Origin: Thalia democratica
Taxonomy: Eukaryota
NCBI GenBank assembly: GCA_965202585.1
Contig: OZ241834.1
Coordinates: forward strand, 31,868,001-31,932,000
Length of the DNA stretch: 64,000 nucleotides
Reading direction: 5' to 3'
Part shown: positions 11,408 through 56,100 of the stretch, piece after piece
Numbering within the stretch: the stretch's first letter is position 1
Layout of the letters: the number at the start of each line of letters is the position of its first letter
Notes under the pieces: model-generated
Told to the model about the DNA's origin: nothing
Database searches by the model: none
The model's input: the letters and a program-made list of their open reading frames with translations, nothing else
Translations under genes and position numbers: made by a program

Positions 11408-12896
11408 AGCCATTTTTTAAAGTTATTTTTTGATTTTAATTTTTGTTAAACAATATAACCGATCGGTAATCGTTATTTTTCACATTTTTTTTAATCAACA
11501 TTTTTAATTAATCTCTTTGATTACGATATTACACTTAGCATAAATAAACTTAGTTTATTAAAAAAAACTACTACACAAACGGTTTTTAGTAAAAAGCTAT
11601 TATTTAAAGCTGCTTTGTGCAAAATTAAAGTTAAATACATATCTTCTTTATCTTTGTTTTCGATATCTTGGCTGAAAAATAGCTTGTTATGGTATGCATT
11701 TGCTCGTATAGTTTTATAGCAGTTTTGGTTTTTGTCTTGAAGTTATTAAATTTTAAAGTTTGACTGTAAAAAGTATTCAAAACGTGTTTTTTACTGCAAC
11801 TGGTATGTTTTTTAATACATGCTGTGCTGTGGATTGCTTAACTTTTTTTGTTTAAAAATTGCTAATTTGTATTTAGCTATGTTATATTAAATAATTTCGT
11901 AAACAAAATTATTTCTTAATATAGGTAATATAATTAAATAAAAAAATCATTCAGATTAATTTATATGCATAGTTAAGTAAACGCTTTATCGTTTAATTTA
12001 ACGAAGAAAAGTTGTATAAGATCGTAAAAATTTGATACTTTTTTTTCTACAAAATATTTTATTTTTGCAGATGTTTGCGAAAATTGACATAAAATCTAAA
12101 CAAAAAGTTTATAATATTATAACGGTACAGCTTTAAAAATAAAGATTGAAACTATGATAGACACTTACTTTAACAGTTTTTAAATTATTGTTAAAACTAG
12201 TTTAACCTTTGAAAAACTAACAAAAGTATTAATTTTAGGAAAACTTTAATGTTTAAAACACGAGAAAAAATAACAAACACAGCGAACATGTATAATATTT
12301 CCGATTATAAAGCAATAAAAAAAAAAGCTTGTTTCTTAAACATTTTTTGATTTTTTTACCATTGTTATTGAAATTTTTTTAAATGTTTAAGATATTTTTT
12401 TTCTATCAAGTTATCAGCTAAAAGAAAATTTGAAAATTATATAGTCTTATTTGTCGTATAAAAAACACTATGTTTTTGCTTAAAAGTATTTAAACATGTG
12501 ATAAAAAATACTATAAAGTGTTTCTTAAAAAAGAAATTTTATTAAAAAACTTTCAAGTTATATAATAACAATAAAATTTATAACAGTATTACTTGAAAGT
12601 TAAAAAAAAACTTTACGGTTTTTTTATTGTTTTGCTTTTGTAGTATACAAATTTTAAACACCCTTGATTAAACTTTATAAAATAACAAAGTAGGGGATTG
12701 TCAATCATTGCAAAAATGTTTTTAACCAAATCTAAGAAATTTACTAACTAACATAATAATTAGCCTGTGTGTAAAGTAAAAATTTAGTACATCTCAATAA
12801 AGGCCCATTAAATACTGAATATTTATAAAGTTTGAGTATATGATTATCAAAGCTTCACTCTATGGTTTAAAGACATACTTTTGATTATTTGTTGCA

Positions 12897-13682
12897 ATGG
12901 ATTCCAGTTCTAAGGAAAATCTACTTCCAATTAATGGTGACAAACCAAGTTTTGAACAACCTAACACAATAATAGAGTCAACTTCACCTGCCATTGACAA
13001 CTTTGAGTATGAGGAGTTTACTGGTGGTAGAAACGGAAGAACGTGCCCCACCTGTCACGGAAGCGGCAGAATATCAAAGGACCATGAGTCAAACGCAGTG
13101 GCAGTGATACCTTACACAGATGACCGGTTAAATCCTTCAAAAACAAAACAGTACGTACTTTTGGCAGTGGTTGTGTGCCTCATTTTGTCAGGATTAAGTC
13201 TGTTTTTTGTTCTTCCACGCTCAACCTCTCTCAGTGACACGCACATAACCAATACTTCCATACTCATACCAGATGAAGAAAATACAGCATATATAAATGT
13301 CACGCACAAGTTCAAAGTTACCAATTACAACTACTTCAGTGTGAAGTTAGTCAACATATCTGTTGAAGCCACGTTTGACTACAAGAAAATATTAGTCGGC
13401 AAGGGTTACTTGCAGTCTCAAGTAAACATTTCCCCACTGAGCAGCCAAATAGTTTCAGTAATGGTTCCAACTATTATGTCCATGGAGAACAACCTTGGGT
13501 TTGTAGCCTTTTATTGTAAGGAATTCGGCTACAGGTTTGCATTGCTCTTAGATGTTCTAATGGAATCTACTTATTTGAATCACAAAGAGGAGAATTCATT
13601 GGAGTCCTACGTCTCCATTGATTGTGGAACTAGGTATTTTGTGCAAAATAAGGGTCAAAACGCTACATATCTTGTAGATTAA
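12897..13682 (+). CDS. TMEM106B: TMEM106 family (TMEM106B-like) type II lysosomal membrane protein, 261 aa, intronless
   Basis: Single ORF: YEEFTG...TCPTCHGSGRI motif, AVIPYTDDRLNPSKTKQYV, TM helix, LEA-2-like luminal domain with NxS/T sites. Confidence 0.93.
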   Translation: MDSSSKENLLPINGDKPSFEQPNTIIESTSPAIDNFEYEEFTGGRNGRTCPTCHGSGRISKDHESNAVAVIPYTDDRLNPSKTKQYVLLAVVVCLILSGLSLFFVLPRSTSLSDTHITNTSILIPDEENTAYINVTHKFKVTNYNYFSVKLVNISVEATFDYKKILVGKGYLQSQVNISPLSSQIVSVMVPTIMSMENNLGFVAFYCKEFGYRFALLLDVLMESTYLNHKEENSLESYVSIDCGTRYFVQNKGQNATYLVD

Positions 13683-18837: not shown

Positions 18838-19566
18838 CAGGGTTGCCTCACACTCCAAATAACTTAAATATATATTTTTTTAATCTCAAAATAACTCAGG
18901 ATATTATGATTTTTGAACTCAGGCTTACTCTGGGTAGTTTTATTTTTTATAAAAAACTCGCTGAGTTGTAAGATTTAAAAAAATCTCTGGTAATAGTTGA
19001 TCCAGTTTCAATATTTTGTTATTTTGTATAATCAATTTTATTCAACAACTTGAAATTTATAGGCTTTGAAATGCTTATTTTTTTTTAGCCTTACGGCTAA
19101 CTCTTTACTACTCTTAAAAATAGTATTTTAGATTTTGTTTTAAATAATATTTATCACAATTTTATGGTAAACAGAAACAGTTAAGGGATATTAAAGTTGA
19201 ACTATGCATTATAAAGTTTTAATAAACTTTCTTAATTAAGTTTTTTTAAGTTTAATAAAATTTTATTTTATATGTGTACTTAAGTCACAGATAATCTATC
19301 AAAACTTTTAAATACTTATTTTCAACAAAGTGAAAAAGTTTAAAGTTAAACTAGTGTTGTTTTACTTTAGCTTTTGAGATTAAAGTTTTATTTGTAGATT
19401 TAAGAAAATATTTCTTATTTTATTAATATTTTTTATTTCTAGAAGAAATTTAACATGAGTTATAAGTAGTTTGTGCTAGAGGCAAAAAACTTTTTTAGAG
19501 GAATTGAAAAACCCAAGATGAATAAGGGTAGTCAAAATTTTTTATACTCTAAGAGTGGCAACTCTG
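18838..19566. mobile_element. CAGGGTTGCC-family non-autonomous element (degenerate)
   Basis: Ends cagggttgcc / gtggcaactctg; flanks cctatg/cgtatg (5/6). Confidence 0.55.
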
Positions 19567-23800: not shown

Positions 23801-26800
23801 ATTAAGATAAAAAAAAAGTTTGACTAAGTAAAAAACTCAGAAGTAAAACAAGCAAACTAAATAATATTAAGTTTTACAAAGGCTCTAAAGTTAAAACTTA
23901 AAGTAGCTTACAGTTTAGATATAACAAACTTATATTTTAATAGAAAACACAGCAAGTATAATAATATTTCATTTTAGCTTCAACTTTACTTGAAAAATAT
24001 TGGATTAAATACCAAACTAAAAATAATATTTTTACCTATTTTTAACTCAACAAAAAAGGAATGCATAATGAAGCTTGGCAATTAAATTAAAAAGTCTACA
24101 AACAAAGAAAACCTTATGTAGAAATTATAACTTTTTAAAGAAAAACTAAACTTGCTTAGTACAGAAAATGGTTACTACTGAATAAAAACCTAAAAATTAA
24201 TCTGAAGTTCTAACTTTGCAAACATAAACACTTAAACTCTTACTTTTCACCTTTGTAACTATAGTTCATTCTTCTCTCCTTTTGGTTGATAAACTTCTCC
24301 ATCACCTCTTCCTTGAAATTAGTACAGTTTTTAAGAAGTCCCTACCAATTGAAATTACACTTAAAGAATTTAACCTTGACTGACCCATGGTGTTTCTCAA
24401 AAATGTTTTGATCCTTTTCAAAGATGAAAATGTTCTTTCAGCTTCTACACTAGTCATGGGAATAGTTATCAGAATTCTAAGAAGCTTTACAGTCTAGTTA
24501 AATATTTTAGTCAGGTTATGTTCTTCAAGATATAACAATATTTTCACTAAAACATCCTGATGCGTTTCTGTACGTGAATAAAATGTTTTCAGTTCTCGTT
24601 CTAACTGTTTACATTCAACTACAGGATAACACTTCTTCACTGTTTCTATAAACTTTAAAAGAAAACAAGATTTATAAACAGTAAAGTATTTTGCCAAAAA
24701 TAACTGCGAAATTCTTAAATGGCATGAAAACTTGAACCTTTCAGTGATGTTGAAGCTGACACTATCACAGACTTCTTTTGCTGAAGAAGAAAGGCTTTTT
24801 TTTAACATTCTCTGTACTACTTGAACTGCAGCTTGAAATGTTTCCAAATGTTGTTTAACTTTTTGAACAGTTAAGTCTGTGCATTGCATGATGTTATACA
24901 AAACTTCAACTGCAGGCATAATTTCCTCTGTTAACTCTGACAATTGGCATGATTTAAGCTTAGAAACTGTCCAATTTACTTGACTAGTATTTTTCTGCAT
25001 TTTCCTAGTTATAAAATCTATAAAAATAGCATTTACCTTTTTCAACAAAAATTTGTTTTAGCTATACAGAGTAAACTAATAAACAGTTTCAATATTAAAA
25101 AAAAAGCAAGGTTGTCACTCTGAAAACAAGGTTGCCACTCTTTGAGTCAAAAAACTGTCCTGAGTGACCTTGAGTTGGGATGAAACACTTTTTTCACAAC
25201 TTGATCTTATTTTATGTAGTTTTTACCAAGCTACAAGATGTTTTTTACAGATTTAAAAAATTTAAAATATTTTTTTAGATGGTCAAAGTTGAAGGCAACA
25301 AAAGGTTCCTTATGGGAGGCACAAATTAAAAAAGGGTTAAAAATGTTTCTTTAGATGTTTCTTTTATAAAACAAAACAATTTGCTAAAATAGAAATCCAA
25401 AACACTACGAAAAAAAAAGTTATAACAAAAGTAATTTTTTTTTGTATATATAAAAATATATATTGATACTTTAAAATTTAAAACTTCTCTTCAACAAAAG
25501 TAAAAAAATTTTATAAAAAGTAGGATGAAAAAGTTTGATAAAAATTGCTTTAAAAATTATGGAGCATATAGGTTTTCAGTAAAATTGTATTTTTTTGCTG
25601 TTTTGGTTTGCTCCTTGTATAATAAATCATTGTACTCTCTGGCTTTGACCGGTTGTATCTAAAAGTTTAATTGGAAATTTCAAGTTTATTAAAGAGTAAC
25701 TATTAGCTTTCTGAAAAAGTTAAAATAAGAACAACATAAAAAAAAGAGCCTATACACCCCCCCCCCCCTTACCCCTTACTATTTTGCACAATTTTTTTTT
25801 ACATACATTAAGATTTTTATTAATCTTTTTTCTAAATTTAATATTTTTTTGTTGGAGATTAAAAATTCAATAATTCTTTAAGGGTATGTTTTCTTTATTT
25901 AAATTTAAATTGTTTTTCATTTTGATGACAGTATTTTTATCAGGAGCTCAACTTTTTTAAGTTTGGTTGGTGAGGCTGTTGACTTTTCAATAAATTTAAA
26001 GATAAATTATAAATATGTAACCATTATAGCAGTAAAAAAATGGTTAGTTAGTTTTCATGTGGCCATAGGGTAAAACACTTATTTTTTAATTTTAAATAAG
26101 CTTGTTATTTTCAGAGTAAAAAACTAAAACTGCTTTAGTCAGCCTGAATATTTTTCTAATTTGGCCTGTTTTAATTTATCTTGGGTCATCTTGAAGTTTT
26201 TTTTAATTTCTAAGTAATCCTGATTATGAGGCAAGGCAACCATGTTTCAACAATTTTATCTAAAATTTTTGCTTTGTTTATGAAAAAATTAAACCAAAAG
26301 TCATATAAAGTAGACTAAATTTTCCTAAAATGTTAAACTACTCTAAGTAATCAAAGTTTCTAAGTTAGGTCTATTTACTTTATTTAAATATGTGACTGTT
26401 TCAATAATACTAATTTTTATTTAATATAAATCTATATTATTTTTCTGTATGAGTAAACTAGAAGTTTATCATAAACTTCTTAACATTTTTTTCAGAACTC
26501 AAATTTTACATTTAAATATAATTTAATTAAACATTTTATTAACTTTATGATAACAATAATTAGTTATAGTTAAGGTTATGTATGCAGATTAAAATAAAAA
26601 ATAAAATTTTTAAGACTTTGGTGATTTAGGTTTTTTATCTATTTTTTTCAAAATATGTAATTTATGACAAGTTTTGCTCTTTTATTGTTTCGTTTTAATC
26701 GAAGTGATCTCTTAAATTTAAAATATCATGTGGGTATATAAACTTAAGTTTGCACTTTGCAGTAGCTTAGCTTTGTTTTTAATTTATGTTTACAATAGCT

Positions 26801-40577: not shown

Positions 40578-41176
40578 TTAAGAAGTAGACTCGCCTGTAT
40601 TCGTTTTACCGATCTGTTTAGTGTTTTTGTTAGCATTCTGGTTCTTTCCCCTGATCCTGCTGGCTATGTTTAGAAGAGAGTACCTCAGTGGGGTCTTCCT
40701 GCGAAACGCCGGGTTCTGGGTCGCGTTTTGGGGGGTTTTCGGGTTCTGCTTGGCGTCTTGGGGCCTAGTGATCTGGACCGTCCTCTTGGGCTGGGCCAGT
40801 CGGTACAATCGGGACGAGATGGTGGATTTGGAGGAGGCTGAGGAGGAGGGTCGGGAGGTGTTTTGGGAGGAAAAATTTTGAGTTGAAGGTTTTTGGACGG
40901 AACTTTTTGGAACGGCCGTTTTTTGGGTGGAACTTTTTGGAACGGTCGTTTTTTGGGTGGAACTTTTCGGGCCAGCGGTTTGAGGTTTTGTTTTGATCGG
41001 TCTCGTCCTGGACTGACTCGTAGCGGGCCGGCTTGAACTTTTCTGGGGAGTCGGGATTGGCGTGGTTCGCGGGCTGGTTGCCGGGTTTGAGGCTTTCAGG
41101 TTTGAGGTTTTACGGGGTGGTTTGAAGGGTTTTGAGGTTGAAACTGGGTTGGGTGATCGCAGCCTACTTCGTGGTT
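40578..41176 (-). CDS. INF2: INF2 terminal exon: ~200-aa basic Ser/Pro/Lys/Thr-rich non-CAAX tail
   Basis: catctag|AA CCA CGA...; phase 1 matches the preceding donor; open for 199 codons; includes the ORF-track entry 40578..40808 and a 30-nt internal repeat ([10 protein letters not shown], ~40890-40980). Confidence 0.85.
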
Positions 41177-44100
41177 CTAGATGTTATAAAAAATAGGTTA
41201 TTTAAACCTTCTTTTTTTAGTTAGAGCTAATTTTTTAGTTAATGATAAAAATATAATTTTTTCAATCTTTGAAAGGTGTTAAGCTTTTTTACGGTTTGAT
41301 AGTAAAAAGAACAAAAATCACTTTGGTACTTAATAAAAGTAAAGTTTAAAATTGTAGGTTTTGAAAAATATTATTTAGATAACACTTTATATTAACGTAA
41401 AGTTTCAACACACAACTAAATAAACTTTTTTACTATACATGCAGCAGTAGTGTTATTAAAAAAAAAGGATTAAGCGCATGCAAAACATAAAAAGTAAAAT
41501 ATAACTTGTAGAAACATTTTTTAGTTCTTAAATTAAAGACTGTATCAACGATAAGTGATTGTTATACAATTAAGTTTATGAAATAAAACTACATCCTAAA
41601 AAACAAATTAGATTTAGTATATTTAAAAGTAATTAAAAAATAAAAAATAAAACTAAAGTTCTATTTAATGTAGTTATTTGGAAACAAAACAATGTAATAT
41701 ATACAACAATCGCATGCAAACTTTAATTATATAATTAATTATTAATATAATACTTTTAAAATTTAGTTTGTCTGCCAACTAGTCAGAACATTTTACTGTC
41801 TACTAAACTTGGAATAAACTACGTCCAACTTTCGTTGACACCCTTTTATCAGGTTCTTATAACTTTTACCATTAATAATTACCACTGGAAATAAGTTCGT
41901 TATATTTTTCAATAACTTCTGAAGTACACAAAAGTTAGTTTTTGAATTAAATAAGTGAAATATTTTCAAAAGTGAAACTTAAGTCTACACCGAAAATTAA
42001 TGACAAAATACCTTACTTTTTTGGGGAATTATTACCTAAGACGTCTTAAAATCTATTGAATAAGGCATCCTGAAATAAAATGAGCTATTTTTATATTAAG
42101 AAACAATACTAGAAATACAAAAGATAAAATAATGCAGGCTGTTCCTAAAACTATTTTCAGCCCAGTTACTAAACTAATGAAGCTTTAAAGTAAAATAGAA
42201 ATAAATAAAAAAGAATTAAAAAATCGTTTATATATAAAAATTGATCTTACAAAAAAATAGTTGAGATTTAATTGAATAACAGTAAAAATTTCAAAAGGAG
42301 AAGCATATGGTGATTTCATAGGTCAAAAGATATTATCCTTCAAGTTTATTTTTTATTTAACATAAAATATAATAAAGAAGTTTTATCAATCTTATGCAAT
42401 ACACATTTAGTTTTTGTTGAAGTGTTTTAACTATACAAAAACTTCTCAACTAAATCTATCCTATAATAGCTTTTTTTTCCCTATTTAATTGCCTAAATGT
42501 AGTTAAATATAGTTTAGTTTCAAACAACAAACAAGTTAATGTGCTTTCTCATTCTATAAAGCTCTAGTGTTTGTATTTTTACTCTTACAGGTATTTCTTA
42601 TTGAATGGTACAGTTGGAATTCTTGTTTTTTATCTTTTTTGATTTTCTTCCTTTTGCATTGCGTTTGAAAAGTTCTTTAAAAATGGTTTACTATAGATTT
42701 TGTCTATTTAATTATAAAGCTTAAAATGAAATTTAATAACGTTATACGGTTTTTAAAAATGTATATTTTTAATGTACTTAAGAAATTTAAACAAAAACTT
42801 GTGCAGCTATAAAATCAAAAAAGATGTCTATAAAAAAAACTACGAAAACTACTAATATAATGTTATAGCCAACGCGATTTTTTAATGTACTATGTAAAAT
42901 AATGCTTGCGTGTTATAAAGTAGTTATTCCTCACACTTTTTTTTTTCTATAAACATAGAGTAAGTAAATTAACGCAAGTTAGTATTATGCTTACATTAAA
43001 GTACTCATTTAACAAATGTAAAAGTTGTATATCTTGAAACTTACTTTTTATACTTAATTCTCTGAAATAGAACATACTACAGGTTTAAGTCTTATTTCTT
43101 AATCACAGTTCATTAAGTACTAATTAAGTGTTACAAAGCGAATATTTTAATGCTTGAAGCAGTTCGGTTTTATTTTCTCAATAAAATTATAGCATTACTT
43201 TGTTACTAAAAATTTTATTCAGCTGGCCACAAGTGTTAACAATTTCTTATGACTTTTATAAAATAACTTCTAATACATGTACTTATAGTAGTTTAAAAAC
43301 AGTTTTGATTGTAATCACCAAGCCTTTAAACTACCACCATACTTAAAGTTTTAAATTACAAGCTTACTACTAAATATTGTTTATTTAATTTAGTTCTTTA
43401 CATAAAGATACACTTTACAGAAATTTCAAGTAGCTTTTATTATAATATCGCATTAAGGGTATAAAAAGCTTATGTAAACTGAAATTACGATAAGCCTATA
43501 AATGCTTTCAGAAAATTATTAATTGAAAAAAATATCCAACGACTAGTCATAAATATTTAAATTAGAAGTAAGAAAAAATTGTAGATTTAACTGCTTTGTA
43601 ATTTAATGTTAAAAGTTACGTAACGATTCAATTTTCATATTACTACGAACATGTGTATTGTTAGTTTTATGGAATGATTACAAGTTTTACCACCTAAAAC
43701 TATTCATTAACACCTAACAGGAATCGATTTTTTTTTGCGTAAATAACACTTAATCAAAACACTTTGCATATACTCGAATAAGAATGTACGAACACTTTGT
43801 TCAAGCGTTAGATTTTTTTAAGATTTTTTGAGGTTAAAAATTAAGTTAGATCCTACATAAGAACAGTCAGCAGAAAATAGCATGCTGATCACAAAAAGTT
43901 GATTGTGACGTACTGTTGATTTACTTTTATGACGTATAATCGATCGCGTCGAAAAATTCTAAGTCTTCGTCTTCGCTTGAGCTCGATCCGTTCCAAGTTG
44001 GTTCTTTTTTGTCGTTATATTTATATGTTTGTGGAAATTTATCAAATTTATCAAAATTAAAAAAAAACCATATATAGTTCTATGAAAATACAAAAGTTAT

Positions 44101-47100
44101 GTATAGCTTTGTATTTTGTTTATAGCTAAAAATAAGACTAATAGTTTGAGTCACTTGAATTTGATTAATAATGAAAATTTTAGGATAATTTAATGGATTT
44201 AATTAAAAATCATTAGAAAAATTCAATTAAAGTTTTATCGATTTTTTTTCAACTAAAAACGTGGAATATGATTGCAAATTTTCGTTTTGATGTAACTTGA
44301 TGCTTAATTTTTTATTTACAGTGTTTTTGAAATCATTTGAGAAATTGAATTGATATTCAATTAATTTCGATAAAAACTAAAAAAACGATTGCATTTTTTT
44401 CATCAAGTAAAATCATATGTACTTTTATTTCAAATGTAACTTACTGCTGGTCTCCTGACTCGTTGCAGCGGTAGACGCAGGTTTTTTCGGATCCACTGAA
44501 GATGAAGCCAATTGATTTGCTTTCTTCTGCGTCAGTCCCGTTGAGTGTCTTTCCTTCGCATTCCTCTGAAAGTTAACTTTCTGCGGCCTGCCCACCGTGG
44601 ACTTCGACCTGGGATTGTTCCTGGAGAAATTGGTGTCGGGCTGTTTCAACTTGGACTCGTTGCTTTTGCTCGCCACTTTTTTCGCTTCTGTTTTCGGTTG
44701 CGCAGACTCGTTTTTAACGTTTACTTTGGGCTTTTGCGTAACTTCACTTGGTTTTTCAATATTTTTACTTTCTGAAACTTGAGCTGCTTTTGGCGTGTCA
44801 GGTCTATTTTCTTCCACTTCACCTGAATTTCCTTTAGTTGAACTTTCACCAGACTGCTCTAAACTTTCTTTGGGGTCTCTTGTTTCTTTAACATCGGAAG
44901 TTTTTTCTTCTGCTGTTTGGTCCGGTAGCACTTTTTCACTACATTTTTCTTCACTGTCTGAAGAAGCCTCTTTCGTTGGTGGAATTTTTACAGTTGAACT
45001 TAGAATTTCAGTTTCTCTTACCTTATCTTTGTTTTGAGGCGTATTAGTTTCAACTGCAGTGTTTTCAATAGCAGGCTTGCTACTTACATTATTTTCGTCT
45101 TTAAACGTGGTTTCAACCAAGCTTTCTTCAGTGTCTTTAGTTTGAGACTTGGTAGTAAAACTATTTTCAGTTTCTTTATTTCCAGCATCATCTTGCTCAT
45201 TTTCGCTCTCACTTGAGCTTGAACTCGACGAACTGCTTCGGCTTTTGTTGCTGAGCTTCTTCTGAAGTTCGTCTAAAACCTTGTTTTGGTTTGCTTGGTG
45301 GGCTTTAACGTTTGATAAAATTGATTCTGAATTCGTTTTAGTCTTAAGGTCCTCATTGCTACTTGATTTGTCGTTGCTGTCTGCTTTAGTATTTTCTACA
45401 ACCTGATCACCTTCTTTGTTTAACTTATCCCCAACAGGTTTACCAGAAGCTGGTTTAATATCATCTAAATCTTTGTTGACGTATTGAATTGCTATACCTT
45501 TAATGTTATTATTATTTTTGTTTGAATTGTTTCCTGATTTTTCATTAGTTTTTGGTTCTATAGACTCTGTTTTCTCTAATTTTTCATCAGTTGCTTCTAC
45601 TTTAGTTTCTTTAACTTCGTTTCGATCGTTATCTACTGATTTTTCGTTCTCTTTCTTATCACTTTTATCAGTTACAACATGATCGACCTTGTGTGTATCT
45701 TTGTTGTCAGCACTTGGTTCATCTTTTACTTCTAACGCGTTCGTTTTATCTTCATCTTCAGCAATCTTCACCAACTTGTTTGGGTCGTCATTATCGTTGA
45801 CTTCTTTCTCTTGTCGCCTAAAGGATCTGTTAGATGAAAAATATTCATAAACGAATTACAACAAAGGTTTAATTTTTTTTGGATTATAAAAGCAAATAAA
45901 CAGCAAATAAAGTCAACGTTACTCATACAGGCTTACATTCAGTTTTACAGAGATTATTCTAAATATTCATCTAACATTTTTGTGTAGCATGAAATGTTTT
46001 TTACGTAGTTTACAAGTTAAAAGGCTTAAAATTTTGTGTAAAATACTTTTTTATTAAAATACTAGTCAGAGTTAAAATCATGTAAAAGTCGATCTATAAT
46101 AAATTTTTTTTAGTAGAAAAACAAACTTGATAAGTCTTGGATAAACAATACCTCTTATAACAAACATTTGTAACTAAATAATTAAACAATTTTTTTGTCA
46201 AGTTTTACAAAGACAAACTTTTTAACAGATCCCAGTCTGCTGTTTTTTCTCCCAACCGGACCTGCGGTCTTCTTAAGCGTGAATCCTCTTTTAATATCAC
46301 CCAGCAATTGGTCGATGATGCAAACCTGTATGGATAACATATATACTTAAAAGATTTTGTGTTTTACACAATAAAAAAGTCAAAATACTTGTTTCTTGTG
46401 ATTAAATCGTTATTTTTTAAACAAATAAACAACAAACACAAATATGTCTAAACTTTATAAATTTAAAGTCTTTAATTTGCGTAATACAAAGCTGCTATAC
46501 AACAAAAGTAAAAAAAATACTAAGCGAGTTGTAATTGAAATAATAAAAAAACAAAGATTTTTTTTTTCGCTCACATCAGACGGCGGCGGGGCTCTTGATT
46601 TCTTCTTGAACCCTCCCGGGTTGTTCTTCTCCTTTTCACGCATGGCCGCCTCTCGCTTCCTCTTCTTCTCTTCTTGAACTTCCCGCTCTTTGTTTTCTTT
46701 CAGCGCTTTTTCAATCTGTAATTTTTTTTATTTCTTTTTAAAATTTTGTACGGAAAACATTTTACTAACACAACACGTTTTCGTTAATTTACTCATACAA
46801 ACAACTGCAGTAAATATTTTTTTTTACCTAAATAAAGGTATTGTCTGAATATGCTAAAAAAAAACAAGCAACACTAAACTGTTTAAAGCTTTTGTTTTTA
46901 TTATAGCAGTAGACTTTACAGTATCATTAATGTTTGATAGAAGGTAAAATCAAGTTTACAGAATGCTGCACTTTAAAGCCAATATAAATAAAAAAGAGAC
47001 ATTCAGTCGTTACTTTATTTAAAACTACTTAATTACCTAATAACTTAGTCAAAACTATATATAGTGAATATCCTTTATGACTTGTCAGTGTATTTGATCA

Positions 47101-50100
47101 TCGTGCAAACTTTAAACAATTTTAAAGTAATAAACTCTTTAAAAACTATTTTATTTGTCCACTCATGTTTCACACACTTGATTGCAGAAGTTGGAGATTG
47201 TAGAGAAGCAGTCCTCCAGCTTGAACTTGTTCACATCCTCCACAATGTACTTGGCGATGATCTTCCTCAGCCTCTCCACCTCTGCGAAGTCCTCCTCGAT
47301 CCGATGGAACCTGGCGGTGGCCTGGGCAAGGAACGCGCTGAACTGCTCCTTGATGTCGTCGCTCCCCTTGTTCACCTGTTTTTCATTTATTTATAAAGTT
47401 TAAAATTTTTGTTCACCTGTTAGGTTTTGAGTCGTTGTTGAGGTTTCTTGTGACATTTTTGTGGTTAAGTTTTATAAAAACTTGATAACATTCTTATAAA
47501 ACGAAATTAACTGCTAAGAAGGTTTTAGTTTTTCCTAAAATTTATAACAAACAGTTTTCAAGACAAAAACAAGAATTTTAAACAGTTCATTTCGATAATC
47601 CACTATAAAGGCGTTACAGTAAATACAAAATTTTTTTACCAGTACTTTCTAAACTACTACAAAAATCACCATTCTTTCGAGCTTCTTGATATTGGCTGAC
47701 AATTTCGTGAAGTCGTTCTTCAGCTGCTCAACCGACACCGTCCTGCACCGAACCACGTCCTTCAGGTCCTCCGGGATCTCCAGCAGCTGCTTGTGGTTCC
47801 TGCTCGCCTCCTCCATCACAACGTGGAGGAGGGTCATCCGAGGCTTGTTCGACTTCGTCTCGGCCAGCTGGTTTTAGGTTAATGATTAATTTTTAATCAA
47901 CACTGAAATTTGTATACTTGTACTAATGTTAAACTAAATACTATATTAAATAATTTGCATAAAGAAATGTTTATTCAAGTTGACTAACGTTTCAATTTGA
48001 CTACAATAACAAAATTAAATTAATTGAGTAGTTAAACAGCTATTTTCACCAAATTGTTATTTATTAGTTTAAGCACGGTATGAAGCTTTAACAAATTTTG
48101 GTAAAAACGAAGATGGTACAAAATCTTAAATCTATGACTAAAATAACGCATACTGTTAGTAAATATAATTTTTTAAAACTAAAGTGTGTATTTTTAGTTA
48201 ATGTTGAGTTTGAAACTTTATCAAACCTTAAGAAGAGACGTGAACTTGAATGCGAATGCTCCTCCCGAATGAGCTCCGTGATTCATGAAGTTGCCTGTCT
48301 TCAAGATCAGCAGGAACAAGTTTTCCAGCTTCTTGCAGTTCTTGATTGCTGGGAAACACAATGTATAGGGTTTTTTTTTTGAAGAAAAATATTTAACACG
48401 ACTAGACTCGCAATGTTATTTGAATATTAAAGACAACATTTTTTTCCTTTAAAGCTAAATTTGTAAAAAGTTAAGTAGTTATCAAAAAATTGATAAGTTA
48501 AAACAAATAAAAAGTTAATAAAAATAAAGTTAAAAACGTTGAGTTATAACTATTTTAATTGCGTTTTATAATTTTAAATTACCATTTGTCAAGACTTAAC
48601 TCGGTTGTAAAAACAAAAATTTTTTACAAACGTAAAAAAACGTAATCAAAAAGTTAATAAAAATAAAGTTAAAAACGTTGAGTTATAACTATTTTAATTG
48701 CGTTTTATAATTTTAAATTACCATTTGTCAAGACTTAACTCGGTTGTAAAAACAAAAAATTTTTAAAAACGTAAAAAAGCATAATCAAAATGAAAAACTC
48801 ACCGTTACAAGCAGAGATGCTCCTGCTCAGAGGCGGCTCGATGGACTCGATCTCCTCCTCAAACAGCTCCCTGGCGATGCACGCCTCAATCCTCAGGTTG
48901 TAGTCCTGCAGGTGGGACAGGTGCAGGAAGTACTTGTCGCAGTTGGCCAGCAACGCGGGGTCCCCCTTGTACGCCTTGATGTTTTCCAGCTCCAGTTTTT
49001 CCGGCTTGAACTTCACCATCCCTTTCAGCTTTTCTTCGGCTATATTAGGTTGACTTATGCTTTATACAGTGACAAGTAAGTACAAGTTACTAAAGTTACA
49101 CAAGTTTAAAGAAAGCAGCACCTAACTCGCTTTGGCTAAAGTAAGAAAAAATATGTTTTATATTCATGCTATAAATTACTAAAGAACATTCAACCCACTT
49201 AAAACGTCCCTATCTCCGTTCTTCAAAGCTTCAATGATCTTCTCATTCGGAAGGCGAAACTGCTTCAGAAATATGTTGATGTTCAAGCTTCTGCGGGAGT
49301 CGACAAAAGACACCTTTGATAGAATATTTTAAGTTATTAGTACTGCACTTGTTAACTGAGCTGTTAAAGCATTTCAGCTATCATAATCGACTTGATAACT
49401 TATAAGCATTTCAAAAAGTAGTATCTTATAGTTGAATTTACTGTACTTCTTTTTAACAAGTTAAAAAAAAAACTTCTGTTGGAGCAGCCTTTTTAGTTTC
49501 CTTCTTTTCTTTCTTCTGAATGATTTTTTGAGCAAACAGTTCTTCAATTTTTTCATAATTTGGGTGCAAGTCATTGCTGCTTTTTTCCATAGATTCCCAA
49601 ATACTATCGGTGCTGTACAAATAAATATAATCTAACACTTGATCTTAGTAACAAAAACTCTAATGAAAAATTGTTTTACATTAAAAGACTAAAAATTTCT
49701 TACAAAAATAACTGTAAGTATAGAAAAGAGTTATTAAATATTTAACAGGAAAGTTAGCTTGAAAATTGTTAAATATTCTAAATATTTTTTTTTGCATTAG
49801 GATTTATTAGAAGTTAGGCTCATCATAAATTAACCTACCTGACAGTATCACTTATCAACTTCTTAATAAGAAAGCTTATCTTTATCATAAAAAGACCTAC
49901 CTGACAGTGACTGATTTTTCAGGAATTTTCTGCCAGTTGAGCTTGCGTAGCTTCTTGGTCGGTTTCGGCACCGACACCGCCCTCCTCACAGGTGGCGGGG
50001 GTGCTGCCTGTCGGGCGTACGCTCTTGGCACTCCTGGTGGTAACGGTATGCCTGGAGCAGCTGGTATGCCAGGCGGTGCTGGAATTCCTGGTATTCCTGG

Positions 50101-53100
50101 AGGAGGTGGAATTCCTGGTATTCCTGGAGGAGGTGGAATTCCTGGTATTCCTGGAGGTGGTGGAATACCTGGTATTCCAGGAGGTGGTGGTATACCTGGT
50201 AAAGCAGGTGGAGGAGGTATACCTGGAATAGCAGGAGGTGGTGGTATACCTGGAATTGCTGGCGGGGGTGGTATACCTGGAATTGCTGGCGGGGGTGGTA
50301 TACCTGGTATAGCAGGAGGTGGTGGTATACCTGGAATTGCTGGCGGGGGTGGTATACCTGGTATAGCAGGAGGTGGTGGTATACCTGGAATTGCGGGAGG
50401 TGGAGGTATACCGGGAATAGGTGGAGGTGGTGGTATACCTGGAATTGCTGGCGGGGGTGGTATACCTAGAATTGCTGGCGGGGGTGGTATACCTGGTATA
50501 GCAGGAGGTGGTGGTATACCTGGAATTGAGGGAGGTGGAGGTATACCGGGAATAGGTGGAGGTGGTGGTATACCTGGAATGGCAGGAGGTGGAGGTATTC
50601 CCGGAATCGCTGGAGGTGGAGGTATACCTGGTATAGCTGGTGGAGGTGGTATACCTGGAATGGGTGATGGGGGAGGTATTGAAGCAGGAGTTGATTCCAC
50701 TTTCGTATTGATTTGTGGTGCAACCAAAACTTTTTTGCTTCCGAGTGAAACTTGAACGCTTTTATTAACCACGCTTGCCGTTTTCTTAACTTCAGTTCTG
50801 CTCTTGGGCTTCAGGAACTTTCTTGCTTCTTTCTCCGTTTCAACGGACGTTAAAGACTGGGCGACTTCGGTTACTACTTCCCACAGAACTTTCGACAATG
50901 CAGGCCCGTCTTTGCTTTCAGGCTTTTCTGCTTCTTCATCGCTGTCTGCTTCCACCTCCAAGTCAAACTGAAGCAGGCATTGAAGCAGCGTTAGAAGCTG
51001 GTTTGACTCTGGCTTGTTGTATATCTGTATATTATTGTTTATTGAATGACAAAAAAAGCGCACAAAATATTTGGTCCTAGGACCTAGTGCACGAAAAAAC
51101 CTTTCGGTTATCGAGTCATACACCACTTGGATACAGTTTAACGTCTTGTCCAGGACAAAGTATTCTATAAAAAGAATGTTATATATATATAAAGTATAAA
51201 ACTCTAAAAGTATATTAAATAATTTTATAAACAACAAGTTTTAGCAGCATTAGTTTATTGCAACTTAATTTTATTAAGTTTTAACTATCTTTGTCTTTAT
51301 TATCTTTTTTTTTTTTGGTTTTAAAACTAAAACTAACATTACTCAAGGGTAAAAAATGTATTTAATTATACCTTTTTTACAAAAATAATTTGTAAATAAA
51401 ACTCTAGTCCTGATAACTTAAAGTCTGACTAAATAGCCGTTGAGTTTCTTTTGAAAAAAAAAAACTACTTAAAGTTTCAATGTTCCAACCTTGTTGAAAA
51501 CAGCTGAAAAAAGGTCTTGATGACTGTTTATGTCGAGACCTTCCTGTCCCATCAGGTGGGAGACCTGAAGTTCATCCTCTTCTTTTCGTTCGTTGAAAAC
51601 CTCAAGCTGAATCGCCAAATCTTCAGACTCGTTTTGACTTCAATTATTTTAAAATAATTTAGCAATTTTTGTAGACTTAAAAGTTTACATTTAAAAAGTA
51701 TTTAATTAATTTTCATTAAGTTTTTTACTTAACTTAAATTTTATTAGGCAAAAAGTTTAGTTAGAGTTTATTCGAATAAGACAGCATTTTTAAGTTGCCT
51801 CTTTAAATATTTTTCCTATGATGTTCTCAAATATTTTTTCATGTACTAGAGCTAAACAAAGAGACAAAACTAAACTATTTATATCTTTTTTGAATTAAGT
51901 TTATAGAAGCTCCACAATTTTTTCATAGGCAGATCATTTTAAGCAAATATTTTTAAAGTTATTAAACTTGTGCAAAAGTTAATTTATAACTAGTCGTTGA
52001 ACAACTGTTCTTTATAGATGTAAATATTAAGTAATATCTAATGATTTGTTTGATTGTAATAAGCTTTATATTATAAAGTGGTTGAAAAATCAAGATGGAA
52101 GAAAAAAAATATTTTCATTAATCTTGTACAAATAGCCAACAATTGTTTTTTATACAATGTAATTTTTATTTTTATTCGATGTTTATAGATAACAATTTTT
52201 AAATTAATTATTAAGATTACCAGTACGATAAAGCTTTGCGTCGAAAGGAAAACAAATATTTTTAAACAAGAACCACAGTTGAGTAGAATGTGTGTTTCCA
52301 TGTGTGATAAGGTTATATAAGCTTATTAACTTTTCTTTAAGTTTATGCTTGAACTTTCACTAAATTTTAACGCAAAAAAAAATCAACTAACTTTTTTTTC
52401 CTATTTCTGATCAGTAATATATAAGCAGATATATGTAAAAAGGAAGAAATATCATCTATTATTATCTAGGTATATATGTTTAGCAAATTATCTTAGATAA
52501 AGTTTTTTTTTGTTTACAGTTTGATTAAAAATGAAAAATAGGGTTCTAAAATTTCAGAAAAAGAAACTAAAGAAAAAAGTTCTATAACACTTAAAACTGT
52601 TTTAAAGCGTTTATTTTTTTAAATTTTATGTATATAATATATAAATGAGGCGGTAATAACTAGAAGTGTGTCTGTTATAAATAACCTTCTTTATTCAAAA
52701 AAAAAGCAATCGCTATATATAAGTTTAAGTATCAAACATTTTAATTCTGTATTTTTTTAAACAAATCAGGATTTATAAAACGTAACTTAAACTGAAAAAT
52801 GTTGTTTATTAAGGTAAAATATATTTACAAAGTTTTTTTAAGCAATGCATGCAAATAGATACTTTACTAATCATGCGTTACAACAATTAAGGTTTTTTAG
52901 ATTGAATTTTTTTTAAAGAATACTAAAAAATTATTTAATTTTCTAACGCAAACTTTTCTAAAAATAGTTTTTTTCCCAAAACATTTTGTACTCCGATTAA
53001 AAACTCATTTTTTAACTACGTCTTTTAAACAAACGAAAAAGAGTTATACACAGTTATTTTATAAAGTTTGTTATCTATTTTTGACAACTTTGTAATCACA

Positions 53101-56100
53101 AGAACTTTTACATTTGATCATATGAAAAATCTAAACAACTATGATTGCATGAACGTTTTTATTTATACTTACTACAAGTTGGAGTCTGTTATATCCCTGA
53201 AGAAAGAATTTTTGAATGAAAAAAATAAAGTAAAAATAAATAAGTGTATGTGGTACTATAATAACTTGACATTTTTTACAGCATACATAAGTACTTTCAA
53301 AAGTTAGTACACTGGTAAAAGTGTTTAAAATTTAAAGCTTAGCTTAATAAAAATATCTCAGCTGTTAGACACAAAAATTTGTTAAGTTGTGAGAATTCTA
53401 ACAAAAATTATCTTAACAAAGTTTATCATACATTATAACTATGTAGAAGTATTAATCACTAGTTGTTTTAACATGAATTATAGTAAAACTATGACAAAAT
53501 ATTCTCACTATTTGTATAATTTTTAATTACTTTAACACTTATGTTTGAAACTTTCATTGCGACATCTAAATTATATTTAGTGGATTTAATCTATAAACTG
53601 TGTTCCGTATCTTTAGTCAAAAATTAATAAAGATAGGAGAAAACAACACAACTAATTAAATATTACTCACCTGAGTTTTGCATTTACATCTAGTAGCTGA
53701 AGACCTGTTAAAATTTTAATAATTAAGTTTTCAAAGTTTTAATAACTTTTTAAAAACAGCTTAGAATAGCTTTATGAATATTAAATTGTGTTTTTGTGTT
53801 TTTTTATAGTTGATTTGTCAACATTTTCGTATAATCTAAAAACGCTATAAACGTTATTAATATTCATAACTAAGTAATAAAATGCTTAAAAACTAAATAA
53901 AATTATTTTAAAAGTAAATTTTAGATGTATAAGTATGAATTGACAAGTTTGCTTAAAATACGTTTCCAAAATGATAAAAACATACCAATAAATTCATTTC
54001 TAATTTGTATGCGTTCCTGTAAAGCTTCGGTAGATAGTATAAGAGCGTTGATGAACGAAATAATAGCTACTTGGTATGGTACATTTTCCGATAGTTTCAG
54101 CTCGTTTACCACTACACTGAACCTGTACCTTTGCTGCTTTGCTCGCTGTAAAATATTATACATATGTTAATCTAAGTTAATTGTTATCATATTAAAATAA
54201 ACTGTTACGTTAAATTTGAATTTCCACTTAGATTAAACTTAACTAAACATTTAAAGTCAGTGGTTGTTTTTTAAAAGTTTTTTTTTAAGTTATCTATCAA
54301 AGTTTTAAACATTTAAATATTTTATTTTACTTACAAATTTTTGCAGAAAATTGTATTGAAAATTCTACTACAAATTATATACAAATAATCTTTAAAAAGT
54401 AAACTTAACACGTATAAATTCGATATTTCATATGAGGGTGAAAATAAAAAGTTGATAAGATCTTGTTTTACAAAAAATTAAATAACAATGAAGACAAGTT
54501 TGTTTATGGGGTTGAGTTTTTAAATGAAAAGCATGTACTGCTACCATTGTTAGAAAATTTACGTAATATAGCAAGTTATTGTTAGAAGAAATTTACACAA
54601 AATTATTTGATAAGATTTTATAATGAAGCAAGTTATACAAATAAAAAAGTTGAATATTTTAAAGCATTTTAAACAAACATAAACTATAGTAATATATGTT
54701 CAACTTATTTTTAAAGCCTTTAAGTAACTTTTTATACTAAATTCTAAGCTACTTTTTATTTAATTACAACATCTTTATAGCTATTAATATTGTATATGTT
54801 TGTTTATATTTAAAACCAAATAAAGAATAGATATGAAAAATTAGCGTTTAAAAAATAGTACTCTACATCAAACTTATATGTGAAACCAAACAACTTTCAA
54901 AGCAATTTAGTGATCACATGGGTTTATTTTCACAAGCAACAACTTATACAAAATGTTGTGGTTTATACCACTTGTTTCATTAAAGCTACTAGAATTTCAC
55001 TAAATAAGTTACTGTAGTACAAAAGTTTTTAGCAAAATTGTATTATCAAATACCACAAAACTAAGTTTTGAATTATTTAAGTAATTTTTTACACTAAGTA
55101 ATCACAAGTCAATTTTGTTTGGAATAAGATTTTTGTATAGCTTTTAAAAAACAAGCAAAGTTTTGTATGATAGTTAAGTTAAGTTAAGTTAAAAGGAAGC
55201 AAGCTATTGTATTAAAATTAAAAAAGCTATCTTTTTACTTTCGCTTGTAATCGTCAATTATTTACTAAATGTTGTTTGTTTTGATCAAAATAAATTCAAC
55301 CATCAAAAAGCAAACAACTATAACCTTTTAAGTGTATCGTTATTTCTATATAAGGTTTTACGACGTTATTAAAACGCACTTATACTGTGAAATTTTATTA
55401 ATCATTACCAGATTTGAAAATATCACTACAACATTTAGAAAATATTTAAAATATTTTCATAAATATGTCTAATAAAACTTTTATATTCGAAAAGCTCTTT
55501 ACTTAAATGATAATTTTAGAATCAAGCAAACTAATCAGTCCTTTTAAATATAAACTATAGATAAATTAAGAATGATTTACGAATAAAAATTTATATAACA
55601 TAATGTACATAACATAAATACGAAAAAAGAGTTCTATATTGTAGTTTAAAAAGCAAAATAAAATTAAATATTAATTGCCACCTTTGTACTTTTTTAAATT
55701 TCGCACAAACTATTTATTTGTGCAAGTAATACTACTAACTCACGTAAAATTATTTGCCAACTTTCAAACTAAACTGTGTTTTCAAACTGAAGTGTAGTTT
55801 TATTTGGATTTTGTTAAGAATATTTTAACGGGTCATAGTTGGTAAAAAAAAGTACATTAAGTAATATAAACTAATTAAAAAATTGAACAAAATTTTAACA
55901 CACTTGTTTCCGATATATAACTCATAATAACTGAATGATACAATAAAACATAGTAGACTGTAAAAATTTAAGCAATTAAGCTGGTTACAAGCAAGTGTTG
56001 CTTATTAATTAAAGTTTAGTTTTGTCATTTCTATAAAAGATTTCATTTAATATTAACCCTGTTTGTATTATTTCTGTTGGAAGTTTTTAAAGACCCTCTG

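Follow-up and report, generated by a model that had tools for sequence, protein, structure and literature searches.

The analysed window, a 64,000-nucleotide stretch of the Thalia democratica genome, has a G+C content of 27%. On its minus strand lies a gene which, judged by its best named matches and its domains, is the tunicate orthologue of INF2 (inverted formin 2). The coordinates of its features are collected in Table 1. Pfam matches were obtained for the Drf_FH3 region (DID/FH3; E 6.7e-13) and for two FH2 exons (E 4e-12 and 2.5e-13); a third FH2 segment reaches 28.7 bits and stays under the cut-off of 34.8. The FH2 part is preceded by a proline-rich FH1 region of about 25 nine-residue IPGIPPPPA units and followed by a WH2-like DAD of the LKKT type, which scores 21.8 bits against a Pfam WH2 cut-off of 23.1 and by eye resembles the motif IIDNLLxDIKKGFKLKK of Ciona. 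With one FH2 exon as query against 1.8 billion protein representatives, an environmental transcript fragment matched at 84% identity. The top named matches were the 'inverted formin-2' of Ciona intestinalis (53%) and its C. savignyi homologue (55%), and INF2 and FHDC-like formins of other animals remained below 40%. The FH1 array is strikingly regular: it aligns with itself in many registers and shares about 80% nucleotide identity with the transcript of a relative described below.

Two further features were noticed in the window. A TMEM106-family gene on the plus strand consists of a 265-aa ORF that matches the N-terminal (E 1e-15) as well as the C-terminal (E 7e-16) TMEM106 domain of Pfam, and an ORF remnant on the minus strand with a hAT-family C-terminal dimerisation domain (E 2e-9) belongs to a decayed, stop-interrupted hAT transposon.

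Table 1. Features of the window, in positions of the 64,000-nucleotide stretch.
Feature	Position	Strand	Basis
TMEM106-family gene	12885-13679	plus	ORF; Pfam domains
Decayed hAT transposon	24305-25057	minus	ORF remnant; dimerisation domain
INF2 (inverted formin 2) gene	ORF pieces between about 61000 and about 46200	minus	domain matches; nearest relatives
Drf_FH3 (DID/FH3 region)	53924-54166	minus	Pfam match
FH1 proline-rich region	about 49950-50700	minus	repeat units
Third FH2 segment	47166-47390		Pfam score under cut-off
WH2-like DAD	46224-46325		Pfam score under cut-off; motif by eye
Long constitutive C-terminal exon	44445..45826	minus	alignment to L001; X4 joints from 44445
FFAT-like cassette exon	43925..44003	minus	X4 joints 44445 to 44003 and 43925 to 41176; also in L002/L003 and L007 of the relative
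Polybasic CAAX cassette (CTIQ), 86 nt	42589..42674	minus	X4 joints; sequence; likeness to vertebrate INF2 CAAX tails
Bare CAAX cassette (CLIQ), probably 53 nt (34 nt, 42036-42069, in the original prediction)	42017..42069	minus	sequence; L001 of the relative; X4 depth
Last exon, kept in all isoforms	40578..41176	minus	X4 joints into 41176; ORF; homology to L001/L002 and Ciona

The variable part of the gene is its 3' end. The long C-terminal exon encodes an acidic, Ser-rich region that ends with ...SQETS and one base (A) of a split codon, followed by the phase 1 donor CAGCA/gtaagt (44444-44443). Between this exon and the last one lie three small cassette exons, each with its own stop less than 40 nt from the donor. 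The last exon, which is homologous to the last exons of Ciona and of the relative (AFRR...TP motif in common), codes only if every cassette is skipped, then giving a tail of about 198 aa that is basic and rich in Ser, Thr and Pro; in all other isoforms it serves as 3' UTR. Since the cassette stops lie 2, 9 and 36 nt from the last junction, all below 50 nt, the cassette isoforms would escape nonsense-mediated decay by the vertebrate rule.

Four sequencing runs (X1-X4) cover the stretch. In X1-X3 the coverage is even over introns and exons and DNA-like. The contigs of X4 lie on exons with near-zero intron depth, their joints show GT..AG ends, and at 46325 a loose end carries on into the exon next upstream. 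Run X4, whose library type is not on record, hence behaves like RNA and was read as such.

The polybasic CAAX exon begins at the acceptor tttttaaag/AAC (42674) and ends at the donor CT/gtaaga after 42589. With two bases it completes the split codon of the exon ending at 44445 in correct phase and reads AA CTT TTC AAA CGC ... TGT ACC ATT CAA TAA, the stop (42600-42598) lying 9 nt before the donor. In the resulting CTIQ end, Cys stands at position -4, a2 is Ile and X is Gln, as in a farnesylation CaaX box. The 21 residues in front of the Cys contain 10 K/R and no D/E, corresponding to a polybasic cluster of the K-Ras4B type. X4 joints were found on both sides of the exon, from 44445 to 42671 and from 42592 to 41176, each 3 nt off the predicted exon ends. 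These offsets are accounted for by haplotype differences at 42672 (G>A), 42673 (T>G) and 42591 (G>A); the three intervening letters of the second joint, AGA, equal the reference AGG with the 42591 SNP. With the SNPs allowed for, the exon therefore spans exactly 42674..42589 and has canonical GT..AG ends. The CTIQ exon is spliced as a real cassette in Thalia democratica between the long C-terminal exon and the last exon, so that a CAAX cassette lies 5' of a retained non-CAAX last exon.

A second haplotype is visible in runs X1-X3. At 42672-42673 it turns the K-L-F with which the CTIQ exon starts into N-F-F, nearer to the K-F-F of vertebrates. Apart from the UTR SNP (42591), it also has a 1-nt deletion in the T-run of the acceptor (42679), and frame and CaaX box are intact.

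The bare CAAX exon follows the strong acceptor ctcattttatttcag/GA (tttcag/GA) with its first base at 42069. Its reading GA TGC CTT ATT CAA TAG gives R-CLIQ and a stop at 42055-42053, the first two bases completing the split codon, so that the product ends with ...SQETS-R-CLIQ. Cys at -4, Ile at a2 and Gln at X again agree with a farnesylation CaaX box, and the two ends differ in a1 (Thr in CTIQ, Leu in CLIQ). The 21 residues before this Cys hold 3 K/R and 2 D/E and form no polybasic cluster. As the original prediction had it, both CAAX exons are present in the sequence with an acceptor, the correct phase and a nearby donor, and the contrast it drew between a polybasic tail of 10 K/R without acidic residues and a bare R-CLIQ end was confirmed by the residue count. 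An alignment of the flanks of the two exons revealed no recognisable duplication; the exons share only ATTCAATA.

Support for the bare exon comes from a related species. A protein found via a Ciona query (P0130), whose FH2 domain shares 56% identity with that of Ciona INF2, ends with ...QEEAS-R-CLIQ. It is encoded by L001, an intronless transcript contig of 4019 nt from a JGI sample, which aligns with the window exon by exon, with about 77-93% identity over the FH2 exons. It joins the upstream exon directly to R-CLIQ with its stop and then to the last exon, and the junction ...GCTAGC A/GA TGC CTT ATA CAG TAG lies at the position of the predicted CLIQ acceptor. Two other transcripts of the relative (L002/L003) carry the FFAT cassette in place of CLIQ and differ from L001 otherwise by scattered single bases. 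A genomic contig (L007) contains the FFAT cassette as well and ends about 330 nt past it, short of the CAAX exons; as the corresponding donor is followed there by an AT-rich intron, L001 is a spliced mRNA. Judging by these contigs, the CLIQ exon is both conserved in the related species and spliced there. Its five codons show two differences between relative and window, both synonymous, in comparison to only 55% protein identity in the adjoining exon, which points to purifying selection on the CLIQ micro-exon.

Protein searches with the exon end of the window and with the C-terminal half of P0130 recovered no polybasic-exon transcript of the relative, and no further isoforms or relatives were found among the candidates screened in this way. 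A scan of JGI metagenome contigs with peptides from the exon that precedes the cassettes yielded nothing useful. The sole match of the spliced CLIQ junction pattern in these contigs (L005) turned out to be unrelated DNA with 46% GC.

For the 3' end of the bare exon there are two candidate donors, TTAG/gtaata (42036/42035) and AAAAAA/gtaagg (42017/42016). A comparison of L001 with L002 shows that the last exon of the relative begins at GAAGCAGG, and hence the relative's CLIQ cassette has 54 nt and ends with ...GACCACAAAA. This end is homologous to position 42017 of the window, not to 42036. At 42029, beyond the 42036 donor, the X4 depth amounts to 13.9 (10.9 + 3.0) compared to 3.4 just upstream of the acceptor and less than 1 further downstream. 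Taken together, 53 nt at 13.9 and the listed intronic contig account for the bin mean of 5.08. Contig depth is a coarse measure, and the X4 depth at CLIQ was counted as weak support. Because of the homologous cassette end in L001 and the coverage at 42029, the exon most likely ends at 42017. The donor of the original prediction, 42036/42035, is probably 19 nt too early. The choice of donor alters the untranslated part only.

Within this untranslated part a 15-mer, AGACGTCTTAGGTAA (window 42032-42046, minus strand; L001 2953-2967), is identical in both species, though the surrounding UTR differs. It holds the palindrome AGACGTCT and the putative donor AG/GTAA (42036), and is a candidate for an alternative donor or for an element that controls splicing.

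We consider it quite likely that the CLIQ exon is used in Thalia democratica as well. According to another, rather improbable explanation the CTIQ exon alone has a function in Thalia democratica and CLIQ is an unused or rarely used relic. Such a relic would agree with the X4 joints, as none of the 15 listed out of 20 (lowest listed depth 13) belongs to CLIQ, and with an X4 contig (record 28, depth 3.4) that crosses the CLIQ acceptor unspliced. A relic is, however, difficult to reconcile with acceptor, frame, CaaX box and stop that are all intact, and with a protein end that is identical to that of the relative's used exon and differs from it in synonymous changes only. Further, the depth at 42029 is at exon level, whereas record 28 is at intron level, which is typical of pre-mRNA. 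That both CxIQ ends are mere chance products of AT-rich intron sequence can be practically dismissed. Such DNA is rich in stops and short ORFs, and a third CaaX-like end in this region, CIFM at 43412, is indeed due to chance, as in-frame stops precede it and a usable acceptor in phase is lacking. Over the six frames of the 64 kb, however, CxIQ followed by a stop occurs three times, and two of these occurrences lie on the strand of the gene within the 3268 nt that separate the last two constitutive exons. Here 0.004 would be expected, and none of 2000 first-order Markov simulations reached two. This count, the RNA joints of the CTIQ exon and the presence of CLIQ in the relative's spliced transcript refute the explanation by chance.

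The arrangement is similar to that of INF2 in other animals. The mammalian INF2-1/INF2-2 isoforms stem from the same gene family and show the same layout with a CAAX cassette 5' of a retained last exon (PMC3237625). The CaaX motif of human INF2 is CVIQ (10.1101/530642); both Thalia tails share its ending IQ and fit the likeness in X = Q that the original prediction had pointed out. Skipping of the cassette yields a basic non-CAAX tail in both animals, although this tail has about 198 aa in Thalia and 9 aa in mammals. Mammals have one CAAX exon, in contrast to two of very different charge here, and the Thalia gene adds the FFAT-like cassette. Apart from a KTKK stretch, the human CAAX tail has a net acidic character, unlike the CTIQ tail.

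In Ciona intestinalis INF2 (XP_026693258.1 / XP_078494222.1 and others) the exon order is the same as in the window: the locus (L004) shows the long C-terminal exon, an FFAT-like exon, a CAAX exon (19285-19410) and a last exon with a basic tail. The corresponding RefSeq isoforms end with ...DKSDKKKKSLCRVQ and a stop (KKKKSLCRVQ), with the FFAT-like tail or with the long basic tail. With 126 nt the Ciona CAAX exon is longer than the CTIQ exon and less uniformly basic. A second CaaX end with a stop is absent between the Ciona CAAX exon and the last exon of this locus. Among vertebrates, a metatranscriptome INF2 (P0052; 62% identical to caecilian INF2) ends with KFFRRNKKGSQEAKVKGNGHTRNKKGCVLQ (KFFRRNKKG...CVLQ), and its tail and the CTIQ exon have the start K-x-F-x-R-N-x-K-G in common. 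Other INF2 C-termini are CVVQ in a frog, CEIQ in a caecilian and CVIS in a jellyfish INF2-like model. On account of the equally placed Ciona exon and the likeness of the vertebrate tail to CTIQ, the CAAX switch is, by these comparisons, at least as old as the common ancestor of tunicates and vertebrates, in line with the ancient origin originally proposed. The accompanying idea that an ancient switch was split into two versions did not hold up as well. The basic exon looks like the ancestral type and the bare exon, seen so far only in Thalia democratica and its relative and absent from Ciona, like a lineage-specific addition, so that an added bare exon is probably a better fit than the splitting of one CAAX exon. 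In the literature search, no paper combining INF2, CAAX and tunicates was found; CAAX isoforms of tunicates are already visible as the database models of Ciona in RefSeq.

CaaX boxes with X = Q are substrates of farnesyltransferase, and a farnesyl group by itself confers weak binding to endomembranes. On this basis, a mechanism can be proposed in which the splicing in of the CTIQ, the CLIQ or the FFAT exon, or of none of them, sets the C-terminus of INF2. Farnesyltransferase would act on the Cys of both CaaX tails, and trimming and methylation would follow. The bare CLIQ tail might provide a default anchoring at the ER or endomembranes like that of mammalian INF2-CAAX, whereas the polybasic CTIQ tail could gain an additional electrostatic affinity for the acidic inner leaflet of the plasma membrane. 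The basic exon would be the older one and the bare exon a gain of this lineage. We favour, with moderate confidence, an INF2 gene with two alternative farnesyl-tail cassettes, one basic and ancestral, the other bare and added, that may differ in their membrane target. The specific assignment of CTIQ (+10) to the plasma membrane and of CLIQ to the ER, which is drawn by analogy, is put forward tentatively and with somewhat less than even confidence.

The closest analogy for such a choice is KRAS. In K-Ras4B a polybasic run together with the farnesyl group leads to plasma-membrane binding, and alternative exons encode the two tails of the gene (PMC9663995). The fourth exons of KRAS4A and KRAS4B likewise give two farnesylated tails, one of them polybasic for the plasma membrane (PMC9663995). 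The second signal of KRAS4A consists of palmitoylation and short basic patches, in contrast to the bare CaaX box of the Thalia gene, and KRAS, which belongs to the small GTPases and does not nucleate actin, has no homology to INF2. Alternative last exons also change lipid anchor and localisation in the canonical (CVLL) and brain (CCIF) isoforms of CDC42. There, the difference lies in the lipid (prenyl vs prenyl/palmitoyl) and not in the charge, and the protein is unrelated to INF2 as well.

Both CaaX exons could also be used and farnesylated with both products going to the ER or endomembranes, the basic stretch of CTIQ serving another purpose such as the strength or dynamics of membrane binding, the binding of microtubules, actin or calmodulin, or release under the control of phosphorylation. 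We regard this as possible and on the unlikely side. Mammalian INF2-CAAX is farnesylated, trimmed, methylated and tightly bound to the ER (PMC3237625; PMC11589041), even though KTKK precedes its Cys (PMC3237625). The CAAX exons of vertebrates and Ciona are basic, too, so that such charge is the norm in this family and no special plasma-membrane signal. Against this stands the extent of the charge, as +10 over 21 residues without any acidic one falls into the range of K-Ras4B, which binds the plasma membrane (PMC9663995). The maintenance of a second, uncharged CaaX exon under selection also suggests a functional difference between the tails.

The tentative reading of two tails with different membrane targets can be taken further, to a KRAS4A/4B-like choice of farnesylated tails that steers one actin nucleator to two membranes, with CLIQ as a recent and ER-only tail and the ancestral CTIQ at the plasma membrane. 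This extended version is speculative and we would rate it as rather doubtful. The plasma-membrane binding of CTIQ might then even be reversible by phosphorylation of the Ser in GRKSKK, similar to a farnesyl-electrostatic switch. If it is true, the FFAT, the long basic and the two CaaX tails would form a four-way address system encoded by splicing, and ancestral chordate INF2-CAAX would not have been confined to the ER.

On the mammalian ER, INF2-CAAX drives actin-dependent mitochondrial fission and calcium transfer, and mutations of INF2 cause kidney and nerve disease. With the Thalia locus, a switch between CAAX and non-CAAX ends that is older than vertebrates is seen in a tunicate in a form widened to two chemically different CaaX tails and an FFAT tail. 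It represents a natural experiment on how the site of actin assembly by a formin is set by the tail sequence in addition to the farnesyl group.

Some observations on other INF2-like genes were made along the way. The Styela clava 'inverted formin-2-like' gene (L006 10001-13081) was considered for the comparison of tail exons and proved uninformative, as it encodes 1026 aa in one intronless ORF of 3081 nt with the stop just past the DAD/WH2. It looks, from its ORF, like an intronless, tail-less INF2 that was possibly retrocopied. Many INF2-like models (P0154, P0184, P0204, P0213, P0176, P0036, P0042, P0055 and P0068) have as a recurring C-terminal feature a lone terminal Cys, as in ...SKC, ...TTC or ...SVC, which is not a CaaX box; the named ones among them are lophotrochozoans (Lingula, Physella, Littorina, Mactra). 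In the Ciona locus, an ORF end CVLL with a stop, a CaaX box of the geranylgeranyl type, is found at 19229, 55 nt upstream of the CAAX exon, and is probably due to chance.
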